In this document: in pieces, positions 50,101-57,693 of the stretch | Numbering within the stretch: the stretch's first letter is position 1 | Layout: every line of letters begins with the position of its first letter | Assembly (NCBI GenBank): GCA_965112735.1 | Contig: OZ218952.1 | Span: forward strand, 3,906,001 to 3,970,000 | Reading direction: 5' to 3' | DNA length: 64,000 bases | Source of the DNA: Phaeosaccion multiseriatum | Taxonomy: Eukaryota > Protista > Ochrophyta, other classes | The notes under the pieces: model-generated | Seen by the model: only the letters and a program-made list of their open reading frames with translations | Database searches by the model: none | What the model was told of the DNA's origin: nothing | Translations under genes and position numbers: made by a program

Positions 50101-51107
50101 TACCGTCTGGAGGTCGAATTCCTTATCCGGAGGTTCTCCAGGCTGTCTATGGAAGCCCACGTTAGCGGCATCCACCAGCACGGTGGGGGGCAAAGGGAGC
50201 TGAGCGATGAACGACTCAAACTCCTCCAGAGCCTGTTTGTGTTAGACAAGGGAGGGAGGGAGGGAGGGAGGGAGGGCGTAAATCAGTAGTCCTGAGGGAA
50301 GGAAGGAGGCACGCTTTCCCTCCTCTCCCTATGCCCCAATGTACCCCCCCCCCACCACCTCCCTCCCTCCCTCCCTCCCGTCCACCTTCTGCTCACCTTT
50401 CTCGGGTCCCTGTACTTTGTGGGCGGGTTCGAGTTGAGCGGGTGCCCGTTGTTCTTGTCCGCACCGAAGAAGCTCCTCGCTCTATCCGTGTCGATATCCG
50501 ACATTATCCCCTCTCGGAAACGCCGTCTTTCATCCCCGGTGAGCTGCCCTGTACGTACATTGAGCGTCGTCTCGCAACACGAACAACGCTGAAGCTCTTG
50601 CTGCGGCTGCTCCTGTATCACTAACTGCTGAAGTTGTTGCGGCGGTTGCTTCCCTCCCCTGCCACCCCCTACGTCCTCTCCTCGAAGAGAGGCAGCAGCA
50701 GCAGCAGCAGCAGTAGCAGGGGAAGGGGGCGGAGGCACCTCTGCTGCCGTACCGTTAACTGCTTCGTCTGCGATGAACACCACTTCGGTGGCCATACCCG
50801 CGTCCGTCAAGGCCGTTGCAGACTGCTGCGATAGCGTCAGCAACTCTGCCGACAACTCCGTGAAAGCGGCATGCATGAGCTGGTGTGTGTCGGATGGAGA
50901 GGGAGGAGCGGCGCGACAGGAAAGGATAGACAGGCGCAACAGAATGATGCACAACACATTTTTTGTCAGTCTTTCACTCACTCACTCACTCACTTGGGTT
51001 TAAGCTAGGGACTCGCTTTCACTCACCGCGGTGAGCTGGTCGATGCCCCTCTTCACTTCCTCTTGTGCCGCCCACCCCTCCTCCACCACTCCCTCCCCTC
51101 CTCCTCC

Positions 51108-51142
<35 letters not shown>

Positions 51143-52563
51143 CTCCTCCTCCTCCTCCTCCTCCTCCTCCTCCTCCTCCTCCTCCTCCTCCTCCTCCTCC
51201 TCCTCCTCCTCGACCCATCTGCACCACCATTTTCTCCCTCTCTGCCCAAGCCACACGAGCCAAGGTGGTAAAGAAGGCCTCCCCCGGGTGATGTAGGCTA
51301 TAGTCCCTGAGCAACCTCCACAGCGCCACCAAGCCCACGGCGCTCCCCTCTCTCTCCAACCGCTCCACCAGCGCTCTGAAGGTGCGCATGGCAGGAGCCA
51401 CACCGCTACCGACCATGTCCTCAAGTGTATCGAGAACCTCCCGTATGTCTCCGTGCTCCACTTGGAGACTGATGAGGCAGCTCCAGCACGCCTGCGAGGG
51501 CACCACCTCTTTTGCCTCGATCGCTCGTCCCGTCTCTATCGCTTGTCCTCCTCCCGCTGCTCGTCGTCGTCGTCCTGCTGCTGCTGGTGCCTGCCGTCTT
51601 CCTACTGCTGCATCATCACCACCTGCTGTATCGTCTGGGTTCTCTTGAAAGAAGGGCGTGCCCTCTCGCATCTCTTCAAAGACTGCCCTCCCTGTGCGGA
51701 GATCCTGCGCGTCGACGCAAAGCTTCATGAGTATGTTGTAGGCGGCCTCAGGCGGGCCCCCTCGCTGCTGCTCGGTCAGCTGACCATTCTTCAGCGCCGG
51801 AGGACGCTGTAGGCGATACCGAGTAGTCGTGCGAATGTCCTTCCCCCTACGCCCCTCTCCTCCTTGTCGTCCTCCTTTCTGCTCGTTTCCTTTCCCATCT
51901 CCTCTTACTGCTTGACGGGGTTTTTCCAGTGCCGCAAACAGCCGCTCTTCCTCTGCTGCTGTCTTGGGCCACTGGCCTTTTAGCCTCATTGCCTCGCGTA
52001 GTCTGCTCTGGGGTGTGGTGCGACTGTTACTGTCACTCGCCTCGCTCGCAGCGACGATGCGATTGAGAGGCTGGAGGTAGAGAACGTTACGGAGCGACAC
52101 GGTTTCCGCAAGACTCCTTTTGCTCCCGTTGGCGCCTGTCTCACCCCCCCCTCCCCCTCCTCCTCCCTCTCCTCTCCCTCCTCCTCCTCCGCTTACTCCC
52201 CTCTTGCGTCGATCAGGGAAGCTGAAGCGACTAACATCATCGAGTCGAATCTCGCCACCATAAGCTTCACTAGTAGTGGGGCGGCGACGGACACCACGTA
52301 CGGAAGAAGAGGATGCCGGTTGCTGCGCCAATGACTCATTCCACTTCTCATGATACTGAGCGCGGTCAGAGTGGTATTGGCGATACTGATGGCCGCGGCG
52401 GTGGCGGTGGTGGTGGTGGTGGTGGTGGTGGGCGTGATAGGGTATACGGGGCTGTAGCTGCCGCGGGAAGGAAACTACCTCATCCATCAACATCTGTCGC
52501 ACCAACGTGCCCTCCAGGCCTGCTACTTCTTCTCCTCCTTCCACTCCCAGCTTCTGCTGCTGC

Positions 52564-52599
<36 letters not shown>

Positions 52600-52766
52600 T
52601 GGTGCTGCAGACGGTCCTGCTGATAGTAGTGGTGGCGATTGCTGCCCTCGTTGGAGATGCATCCGCAGCAATGCGGTGGAAGATTTGCTGGTGCTCCCCT
52701 CTCTCTCCTTCCTCGACTGACGTGCAAGCCAAGGCTCCTGCGCCGTACCTCCCTCAGAAGCCTCAT
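46497..52766 (-). CDS. PRORP: Protein-only RNase P (PRORP), ~1236 aa; exons 52766-51027, 50879-50397, 50232-50095, 49706-49557, 49253-48813, 47847-47724, 47447-47247, 46930-46497
   Basis: PPR repeats (AYNILMKLC..GRAVFEEMRE; CWSCLI..LEDMVGSGVAP), Zn site (CSCC, WHCP, WLC), and NYN nuclease motifs VDAANVG, LDDYLW and ITNDRMADH. The N-terminus is Arg-rich. Confidence 0.92.
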
Positions 52767-52939
52767 GTACTATGAGCAGAAGGTGATGTCCAATGCAGAG
52801 GCGGCCTGCTGTTTTTTCTTTCTCTCTGTATCTACGACTGTATGGTGGCGGCATCCCATCCCTCGTTGCCTAAAAGTAAAGCTCGAACTTTCAATTCCCC
52901 CCCCCGCCTCGACAACTTGGCCTGGAGCATCTCTCTCTC

Positions 52940-53844
52940 ATGTCCAGAGCAATGAGGTAAGGATCAAGGATTTCCCTTGATACATATTGTACCACCTGAT
53001 CCTCTAAATACATCTCCTCCGTTGTCGCTCTCACAACACCCCTTCTCCTTCTCATCCCCTCCTTTGCTTGCAGCGCTCAACTCTTGAGGGCTCCTCTATG
53101 CCGCTCGGGGGGTATCTCTCGATGCCTAGGTGGCTCAACGTCCGCGCTCTTGACCAGCAGCAGCAAGCAGGCACTGCAACAGCAGGAGCGACGGTATAAC
53201 CGTCGGCACTGTCTACAGCAACAGCACCAGCCATTGTACGAGGGAAGTGGTGGGAGTGGTAGTGTAGGCTTCATGTCCTTGTCCTCGGTATCAAGGGTAG
53301 GAGGTGGTGGCTTATACAGCAACGCCAGCAGGAGGAGTATCAGCGGCGGCTTCATCGGCAGCAACTCCAGCAGACGGCAAATGTCGTCAATAGTGGACAA
53401 GATTCAGTCTAAATTAGAGCAGAGGAATACCAAAAAGCAAGGCGACTCCTTCCGCACGCAGCTCAGGGCCATGCGCGATGCAGACAAGTACGATCTTGGA
53501 GACTTCCTCGCCACCCTGGACCAGGAGAGCGGATGGTGGCAGAAGGTACGAGTATGTGTATGCTGGTTGCAATACCTCTATGCCTGTACCTCTACCTGTA
53601 TCTGGACCTGGTTTTTGCCTATTTTATATGTAGTAAGCATGGCATGACTCTCTCTTCCCTTCCTTCCTGACTACCAGGTACCAGGGCTGAACAAGCTCGG
53701 AGGAGGGGAGCAGATGCAGAGAAACAGGGCCATTCTCAATGTGAGTAGGGAAGGGAGGATTAGTGACGCTGCGAACAGGCACTACAGACAGAGAGAGATA
53801 GAGAGGTTTGGATGTGACAGGAGACAGAGGAATGAATAGCCGCT

Positions 53845-53875
<31 letters not shown>

Positions 53876-54703
53876 CACAGCAGAGGCCAAATTGGACTCG
53901 ACGGCGCGAGACATTCGCTGAAGTCCACGGCCACCCCGCAGCACTTTCACTGCGTCCACCCCTCACACTTGATTGTCCTCTGCCCTTTTGTTCTCTCTTT
54001 TCACACTTCGCTGGCCCGCGGCTCGCTCACTCGCTCACTCGCTCACTCACTCACTCACTCACTCACTCACTCACTCACTCACTCACTCACTCACTCACTC
54101 ACTCACTCACTCACTCACTCACTTACTCAGAGCATTCACTCACCCACTCACTCACCCACCCACTCACTCACTCACTCACTCACTCACTACACTCATTTTC
54201 CCTTTCTCTGTGTTGTCTCTGTCTCCGGGCGTCGTCAGGCCTTTACCGAAGAGGAGAGGGCTGACCCTTCCCTCATCCACGGGGGCGTCAGAAAGCGCGT
54301 TGCGGAAACGTCGGGCGAGGTGAGGTGTGATGTGCGTGTCTTGTTCGTTGCCGCGGCGGTGATCCTTCGTGATCCTTCGTTTGCCGTGGGGTGAACGTGT
54401 CTCTTCCTCCCCCCCTACCCAAACAAGCGCAACCACAGCTTCTGATCTCGGCCCTTTGACCTTGGCCCACCAACCCCACAGCCTGAGGAGCAAGTGGCGC
54501 ACGTTCTGGAAAATTTCCGCCAAGCGAATGCCATCTACAACTGGATCCAAGCACGCAAGAAGAAGGGCGAGCGTATCCCCAAGAGTATGGGCGAATTCAA
54601 CTTCCTTTCCACCAAGCCGGGCCAGACCAGGCTGGCGCAATTCATCAACGGAGGGGAGAGGGGGGCCATGAAGCAGCAGCGCAGTAGGAAGAGGATGTTT
54701 TGA
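52940..54703 (+). CDS. SRP54/Ffh M-domain-only protein with a predicted mitochondrial presequence (mL105-like), ~284 aa; exons 52940-52956, 53074-53545, 53678-53740, 54239-54319, 54482-54703
   Basis: YDLGDFLATL..KVPGL..AILNAFTEEERADPSLIHGGVRKRVAETSG..EQVAHVLENF mirrors Ffh FDLNDFxEQL..LPG..AIINSMTxxERxxPxxIxxSRKRRIAxGxG..xEVxxLLKQF. There is no NG GTPase domain, and the N-terminus is R/S-rich and acid-poor. Confidence 0.8.
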
Positions 54704-55907: not shown

Positions 55908-57693
55908 TTAACCCTCCAGGGCGGCGGCACCTGCGAGGGGGTGAGGAGAGGGGACAAAAGAGCAACAGAGGGAAAGAGTCAGTACACTCAGTTTGTGTGA
56001 CAGGCAAGAAAAAAAAATCGGGTCGCGTAACAAAATCGAAACGACGAAGGCACCAGAGAGACAAGAAAAACAAGTACCAACCCACCCGCCCCACAACAAG
56101 ACTCGAGAGTAACACACAAGTACGCCAAAAAGTACGCACGCACCTGCCACAATCTCCATCAGCTCCTGCGTGACGGAGGCCTGTCGGGCGCGGTTGAAGG
56201 TGGCGGACATCTCATCCACAAGCTTGGAGGCATTGTCCGAGGCAGACTGCATGGCCTGCATTCGGGCGGCAAGCTCGGAGGCCACGGACTCCTGCAGGAC
56301 TCGGAGCATCTGTCCGTCGAGGTAGAGGGGCAGCATGTAGTTGAGGATGGAGATGGGGTCCTGCTCAAACTGGAAGTCCGGGGTAATTTCCATCTTGTCT
56401 CCCTTGGGCACGGGCTCGCGGTTGACGCTGAACTTTCCGTCCTTGGAGGTGAGCATGAAAATCTCGTCACCCTCCATTTCAATTCCACGGATGGTCAGGG
56501 GCAGGAGGGTACGGATGGATGGGTCGGAGGAGATGAGCGAGTTGAAGCGTGTGTAAATGAGCTCCACCGAGTCCGTCTCGCCGGAGAGGTAGTCGTTGAG
56601 CAGCTCCTGGGAGATGGCGGAGGCAACCTTGGCGTTGGGGTTTTGGGTGCACTCGAACGATCGCACGATGTTGGTCTCGCGCCTCTTGAAGTACTGAATC
56701 ACCTTCTTGCCGATGGTGATGAGCTCCACCTTTTTATTCACACGGAATTGTAATTCAAAACAGGTATGACAAGGAAAGGATTGGTTAATTTCGGGAGGAT
56801 TGGTTGCACATGCCGGAAATTAGGGTAGGTATCCGGCAATCGATTTGGGGGGGGGGGTGAGTTGTACGTTACATACACGTTAACGTTACATGTGACTAGA
56901 TGAGAGATTGGGGGGACAAACACAAAAATGCGGCATCGAGTGTACTAAACCTCCTGTGGGACCGAGAAGGATTCAGAATGGGTGGAGTGGGTAACGCTTG
57001 AATGGGTCCGCCAACCAGACCAGAACCAAGGAAGAGACAACAGCAGAGCAAAGAGAAAAGAGAGCGGCAGCGGAAAAAAGGGAACCAGCACCAACACAGG
57101 CACTTGCTTCCGAAAAAAACTCCTTCAAGCTCTTGCTCCTCCTCCTTCAAGCTCACCTCAAGTCCCTGATCCTTGAGCTCCTTGATACGCTGCTCAGTCT
57201 TCTTGATCGCGTACGAGTTGTACGCTCCGCACAGACCACGGTCTCCTGCTACCGTCACCAACAACACGTGCTTCACCTCCCTCTGCTCCAGCAGGGGCAG
57301 GTCCAAGTCCTCCTTCTGCAGCTGCCCAACGAGAGCACCAAACAGACCCTGCAGGCACTCCGAGAATGGTCGCGTCTTAAGCACAGCGTCTTGTGCCCTT
57401 CGCACCTTGGCTGCTGCCACCAGCTTCATGGCCGTGGTGATCTTCTTTGTGTTCTTGACGGTATCAATGCGCTCCTTCAGCTCGTTACTCTTGCCGTCCA
57501 TCGTAATCGTCCCCCGCACTGTCCTGGTACCCCTGGTGCTTCCGCCTGTCAGGTCGTTCATCCTTTCTACTACGTTCGCTCGGGCATACATGCTCGTCTG
57601 GGAGATTGTGGGAGTGAACTGGAAAGCATCGGAGGTGCCCACCATGACAGCCGCTGCTGCCACCACCGCTACACTTCGCTTCATGAAAACCAT
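55908..57693 (-). CDS. atpC: Plastid ATP synthase gamma subunit, 381 aa; exons 57693-57157, 56729-56144, 55930-55908
   Basis: KITTAMKLVAAAKVRRAQ, GDRGLCGAYN, ASELAARM.AM.SASDNA and ITQEL-like VTQELMEIVAGA. Bipartite targeting: hydrophobic signal peptide then SDA-FQF. Confidence 0.97.

Follow-up and report, generated by a model that had tools for sequence, protein, structure and literature searches.

The 64-kb window analyzed here (the whole stretch of 64,000 nucleotides from the Phaeosaccion multiseriatum contig OZ218952.1) contains a region with similarity to the M domain of Ffh/SRP54. The question raised by this locus is whether the domain is encoded on its own or belongs to a longer Ffh/SRP54 gene, to which protein family the product belongs and what it may do in the algal cell.

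Gene model and predicted product

A gene of five exons was found on the plus strand at 52940–54703. The coding sequence of 855 nt encodes a 284-aa product, all intron borders are GT-AG, and the GC3 of 0.70 was close to that of the neighboring ATP synthase gamma gene (0.705); the overall GC content of the introns was 0.45–0.59. The spliced product was compared to Escherichia coli Ffh and to the closest relative found, a 237-aa unnamed protein from the brown alga Discosporangium mesarthrocarpum (P0002), which is likewise an M-domain-only protein.

Exon 1 (52940–52956) consists of 17 nt that encode MSRAM and the first two nucleotides of Ser6, and is followed by a phase-2 intron. Exon 2 (53074–53545) encodes aa 6–163. 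It contains the remainder of a presequence-like, low-complexity N-terminus (aa 6 to approximately 100), the N-terminal helix of the MAP67 family and M-domain helix 1 (YDLGDFLATLDQ...GWWQK), and aligns with residues 57–120 of P0002 and residues 302–353 of E. coli Ffh. According to the alignments to P0002 and Ffh, exon 3 (53678–53740; aa 164–184) encodes the VPGL motif, a shortened finger loop and the start of M-domain helix 2. Exon 4 (54239–54319; aa 185–211, AFTEEERADPSLIHGGVRKRVAETSGE) is the counterpart of the SMTxxER...SRxxRIAxGSG helix-turn-helix of Ffh. The last exon (54482–54703, stop codon included; aa 212–284) encodes the last M-domain helix, a MAP67-type W-x2-ARKKKGERIPKSMGEF motif and a basic tail ending in F.

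The four introns are 117, 132, 498, and 162 nt long; all of these lengths are divisible by three, and three of the introns are in phase 0. Each intron contains an in-frame stop, so that splicing is required and the exons cannot be joined by read-through; retention of any one intron would give a truncated and not a lengthened protein. The alignment with P0002 contained two gaps, both of a single residue and both upstream of the exon 2/3 junction. It was gap-free over residues 159–265, i.e., across the three downstream junctions, which shows those exon borders to be correct. The evidence for the predicted splicing as a whole consists of homology and conserved intron positions. Contigs from four public sequencing runs of one sample continue through the introns and no splice joints were found in the runs, which thus behave as genomic DNA. 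The five-exon gene proposed in the initial annotation was in this way confirmed by the GT-AG borders, the coding-like GC3 and the alignment with P0002.

Intron 3 (53741–54238) contains a (CACT)n-type microsatellite at 54019–54197 on the plus strand and also a (CAG)n run, especially at 53845–53870, and both repeats interrupt the short-read contigs of the public runs. In intron 4, two nucleotides are deleted at 54409 in one of the runs.

The N-terminus of the product is rich in Arg and Ser and poor in acidic residues, with nine R/K, one D/E, and 11 S/T among the first 60 residues, and a hydrophobic signal-peptide core is absent from it. The presequence-like character that had been ascribed to this region was thereby upheld as far as composition is concerned, and the composition is consistent with mitochondrial targeting of the 284-aa protein. 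Cysteines are found at residues 15, 23, and 52 only. The C-terminus reads ...QQRSRKRMF, as in stramenopile relatives.

Similarity to the Ffh M domain and absence of an NG domain

E. coli ffh was taken for comparison from the annotated K-12 genome (L002:11435–12796, minus strand). In blastp, the spliced product showed 46.6 bits to E. coli Ffh (pairwise E = 3e-10), with residues 111–223 of the 284-aa protein aligned to residues 302–420 of Ffh, i.e., to the M domain only. A Smith-Waterman score of 122 was obtained, compared to 34.9 ± 5.3 for shuffled sequences (z = 16.5), and none of the 2000 shuffles scored as high. The similarity begins at about residue 105, and the alignment pairs YDLGDFL with FDLNDFL, VPGL with LPGM, VAHVLENF with VNRLLKQF, AILNAFTEEERADPSLIHGG with AIINSMTMKERAKPEIIKGS, and RKRVAETSG with RRIAAGCG. 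Gaps made up 20 of the 126 columns, and deletions of six and seven residues flank the finger loop, which is approximately 20 residues shorter in the algal protein than in bacterial Ffh. Homology to bacterial Ffh and eukaryotic SRP54 thus covers the whole M domain and the RNA-binding helix-turn-helix is recognizable; in contrast to these proteins, the algal protein contains neither an N nor a G (GTPase) domain and is not enriched in methionine (6 Met in the last 180 residues).

Searches with single exons gave a weaker signal. For exon 4 alone (27 aa), SRP_SPB (PF02978) was the sole Pfam match (profile positions 47–71 of 91), although weak (E = 0.021), and all five PDB matches were to Ffh/SRP M domains, the best being Thermus Ffh (2ffh_A, E = 0.038). 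The C-terminal part of exon 2 and exon 5, each used alone, gave only noise in the Pfam and PDB searches. Both the pairwise similarity to Ffh and the exon 4 match to SRP_SPB agree with the M-domain identity assigned in the initial annotation.

In Ffh, the SMTxxER...SRxxRIAxGSG helix-turn-helix binds SRP RNA. The corresponding motif in the exon 4 region (54293–54325) reads GVRKRVAETSG. Compared to SRKRRIAAGCG of E. coli Ffh, Gly-Val stands in place of Ser-Arg, Thr in place of the first Gly in the closing G-x-G, and Glu in place of one Ala. The divergence of this motif that had been pointed out before was thus found to include both the Ser-Arg pair and the first Gly of G-x-G, and the intact SRP-RNA-binding motif SRxxRIAxGSG that characterizes Ffh/SRP54 proper is not present in the algal protein. 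To our knowledge, an SRP RNA partner has not been described from such mitochondria, and the degenerate motif fits the loss of a 4.5S-type RNA partner.

An NG GTPase fused to the M domain, which is the mark of Ffh/SRP54 proper including mtFfh and cpSRP54, is absent. The upstream neighbor is a gene for a PPR protein on the minus strand (51000–52766; a single ORF of 588 aa, PPR_2 E = 2e-8), and the intergenic spacer between its ATG at 52766 and the start of the M-domain gene comprises 173 bp (52767–52939). With the two genes head to head, NG exons cannot be accommodated in this spacer. When the 64-kb window was scanned for motifs in all six frames, neither DTAGR nor LL.[AS]DV was detected; GxxGxGK[ST] was found only in glycine-rich or stop-flanked junk without a credible P-loop, and in all no credible G1, G3, or G4 GTPase motifs were present in the window. 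In addition, the alignment of the spliced product to Ffh did not extend before Ffh residue 302. An upstream NG-domain exon was rejected on the grounds of the opposite-strand PPR gene approximately 174 bp away and the lack of GTPase motifs in the window. The claim that the M domain stands alone therefore held against the neighboring gene, the motif scan and the start of the Ffh alignment alike.

The PPR gene contains long runs of Gly, Gln, and His. Its start codon and that of the M-domain gene are approximately 174 bp apart in head-to-head orientation, and because of these closely spaced divergent starts the two genes, both organelle-related, may be driven from one bidirectional promoter. A different arrangement was found in Discosporangium, in which the upstream neighbor encodes a hexapeptide-repeat protein. 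On the downstream side, a gene for a plastid-type ATP synthase gamma chain (atpC) was found on the minus strand at 55911–57693, convergent with the M-domain gene and made up of ORF blocks at 56899–57693 and 55911–56741. Its best named relatives (66–70% identity) were from the PX-clade ochrophytes Chrysoparadoxa, Choristocarpus, Discosporangium, Undaria, Ectocarpus, and Ascophyllum, compared to about 60% identity to diatom gamma chains. By these identities the source of the window is an ochrophyte that is close to the sampled brown algae but lies outside them.

Relationship to the MAP67/mL105 family

A protein family with the same organization, an M domain alone behind a mitochondrial presequence, was described as MAP67 (Pyrih et al., 2021, Mol Biol Evol, PMC8321541). 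The same study found MAP67 in most major eukaryotic lineages with the exceptions of Metazoa, Fungi, Discoba, and Metamonada, considered it probably already present in LECA, and identified MAP67 as orthologous to the mitoribosomal protein mL105 (PMC8321541). Its Table S7 lists MAP67 from the stramenopiles Blastocystis, Phytophthora, and Ectocarpus (CBN79862.1), as well as from haptophyte, cryptophyte, red, and green algae (PMC8321541). As judged by eye, the MAP67 sequences in this table are collinear with the 284-aa protein. In the Tetrahymena mitoribosome, mL105 was located at the exit tunnel and recognized as an Ffh M-domain homologue without NG, with its C-terminal helix inside the tunnel (Tobiasson and Amunts, 2020, PMC7326499). 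In Polytomella, a green alga, mL105 was likewise seen on the mitoribosome, where it touches a density attributed to the Oxa1 insertase (Tobiasson et al., 2022, PMC9576764). The distribution of mL105 is treated as known from earlier literature in a 2026 preprint that deals with mitoribosomes across eukaryotes.

A search with exon 5 alone (73 aa) against 1.84 billion representative proteins gave five matches at E ≤ 0.001, and among these the Discosporangium protein P0002 was the only true relative (E = 2.7e-8, P0002 residues 170–229). The other four (P0001, P0003, P0004, and P0005) are internally repetitive and were rejected as spurious. The full spliced product showed 114 bits to P0002 (E = 3e-35) with 33% identity and 59% positives over 167 aa. 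With 114 bits to P0002 compared to 46.6 bits to E. coli Ffh, the algal protein is nearer to MAP67 than to Ffh. The C-terminal W..R...G...P motif was also conserved, WIQARKKKGERIPKSMGEF being aligned with WLRARKAKGQRIPKTQEEL of P0002.

P0002 itself scored 29.8 bits to Pfam SRP_SPB, above the gathering score of 27, and covered positions 2–90 of the 91 profile positions. Its best PDB match was 6z1p_AT, the “Signal peptide-binding domain protein” of the Tetrahymena mitoribosome (mL105), with E = 6e-9. This alignment covered P0002 residues 71–210 including the C-terminal KG.p.P motif, and Ffh M domains followed at approximately 1e-4 (best Ffh 9e-5). Polytomella mL105 was not among the PDB matches of P0002, and 6z1p_AT was not matched at E ≤ 10 by single exons of the 284-aa protein. 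The sequence link between the algal protein and mL105 of Tetrahymena thermophila (6Z1P chain AT) and Polytomella magna (PMC9576764) is therefore transitive through P0002. The parallel drawn in the initial annotation to ciliate mL105 as an M-domain homologue proved correct, both from the published structure (PMC7326499) and from 6z1p_AT as the best PDB match of P0002.

The algal protein shares its layout with stramenopile MAP67 (Ectocarpus CBN79862.1 and P0002), i.e., a putative presequence, a helix (..DKI...R..K...F..) and then the M domain, without NG. Motifs in common are YDL.DF, GW..K.PG, ER..P..I, and R.RVA..SG within the M domain, and W..ARK.KG.RIP...E followed by a basic tail ending in F at the C-terminus. 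Compared to P0002 and stramenopile MAP67, the region preceding the domain is longer (about 100 compared to about 65 aa) and of lower complexity in the 284-aa protein. Neither the SEC-C extension (four-Cys metal-binding) of Chloroplastida MAP67 nor the SecA-like tail of centrohelid MAP67 is present, as expected for a stramenopile. A downstream SEC-C exon was considered and rejected, since cysteines are confined to the three N-terminal positions given above and the stramenopile orthologues end at the same place. The lack of this tail fits the ochrophyte placement given by the atpC neighbor.

The Discosporangium gene was located on contig CAXNAE020005067.1 (L001:4019–7317). Its first exon is also 17 nt long and is followed by a phase-2 intron, with AG|GT inside the codon for Ser6, just as in the gene described here. 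A phase-0 intron that precedes the last M-domain helix was found at an identical position in both genes (GE|PEE in the 284-aa protein and GC|SEE in Discosporangium). These are the two intron positions common to both genes, and the remaining positions differ. On this evidence the gene is an orthologue of brown-algal MAP67.

Further searches added no relatives. When exon 2, extended by reading into the intron so that proteins of 105–332 aa could be candidates, was used in a word-index search, no match was obtained, not even to the product of the gene itself, and the 284-aa product may thus be missing from public protein sets. The same type of search with P0002 detected P0002 only, as a 5-residue word index is too insensitive for a fast-evolving family. 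An ESM Atlas look-up with exon 5 gave no usable match. An AlphaFold2 model of P0002 made from the single sequence without an alignment was poor (pLDDT 46.9), and a joint MAFFT alignment of P0002 with the separate exons was discarded because the short fragments were misplaced.

Predicted role and alternative explanations

Taken together, we consider it very probable that the gene encodes the ochrophyte orthologue of MAP67/mL105, i.e., of a mitochondrial protein derived from the Ffh M domain and, in Tetrahymena and Polytomella, located at the mitoribosomal tunnel exit. MAP67/mL105 would descend from the M domain of an endosymbiont Ffh, the N and G domains having been lost. By analogy with Tetrahymena and Polytomella, the nucleus-encoded protein would be imported into mitochondria through its N-terminal presequence and would be built constitutively into the large subunit of the mitoribosome, at the polypeptide exit tunnel, docking in the place that the Ffh M domain takes on bacterial ribosomes. 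Its C-terminal part may reach towards or into the tunnel, and the protein may bring the nascent chain into contact with the insertase of the inner membrane (Oxa1), presumably with no SRP RNA, receptor or GTPase cycle involved. Mitochondrial import, ribosome binding and a membrane-targeting role are thus predicted here from the characterized orthologues, and by the same analogy the ribosome-tethered, RNA-free mitochondrial M-domain protein first proposed for this locus appears reasonable.

As a member of the family, the protein could instead function for the most part in soluble form and independently of the ribosome, as a chaperone or targeting factor for hydrophobic proteins of the mitochondrion. 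Before the ribosome structures, the proposal for MAP67 went no further than possible binding of signal-peptide-like N-termini (Pyrih et al., 2021, PMC8321541), and ribosome binding in the ochrophyte lineage is itself predicted from orthologues. This explanation is nevertheless improbable, as in both a ciliate and a green alga mL105 is an integral tunnel-exit component of the large subunit (PMC7326499, PMC9576764), and W..ARKKKGERIP is conserved in the 284-aa protein, the counterpart region of Tetrahymena mL105 (the C-terminal helix) entering the tunnel. With 6 Met in the last 180 residues, the M domain is also not the methionine-rich groove that characterizes classical signal-sequence binders. 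Decay of the copy into an unexpressed pseudogene, or a chance open reading frame, was judged extremely improbable. The four intron lengths are all multiples of three and the available reads (four runs, one sample) are genomic only, which would suit such an origin, but the frame is intact over five exons with a GC3 equal to that of the bona fide neighboring gene, and the in-frame stop in every intron makes splicing meaningful. Moreover, the whole domain has been kept, with 33% identity to the orthologue from an alga of another class and with shared intron positions.

The direct similarity of the M domain to bacterial Ffh would also be expected for a plastid or cytosolic derivative of cpSRP54/SRP54, or for a block of exons from a complete SRP54/Ffh gene in which the NG exons had been overlooked. 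The next gene downstream encodes a plastid-type ATP synthase gamma chain, but proximity alone does not indicate that targeting is shared. Against such an origin, the product scores far higher with MAP67 (114 bits) than with Ffh (46.6 bits), the upstream neighbor lies on the opposite strand approximately 174 bp away with no credible GTPase motifs in the window, and the M-domain-only orthologue from Discosporangium has kept the start codon together with the 17-nt first exon. Import into the complex plastid of ochrophytes needs a hydrophobic signal peptide, and the N-terminus of the 284-aa protein is without one. A derivation from SRP54/cpSRP54, or a missed NG domain, is thus largely refuted and was considered highly improbable.

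Returning to the MAP67/mL105 orthologue, its RNA-binding helix-turn-helix is comparatively Ffh-like (RKRVA..SG), and from this it could be proposed that the ochrophyte protein is more than structural, the helix-turn-helix recognizing an rRNA element or the protein cycling on and off the mitoribosome. We regard this as unlikely. If the cycling version were true, the protein would be a nascent-chain sorting factor that decides whether a chain is inserted into the membrane or released to the matrix.

A stand-alone Ffh M-domain protein that is widespread and built into mitoribosomes is already published, and the family is listed for stramenopiles. The present analysis adds a MAP67/mL105 gene model from a further ochrophyte alga. 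It also adds two intron positions, that of the 17-nt first exon included, which are conserved between distant ochrophyte classes and suggest that introns in ochrophyte MAP67 are ancient.
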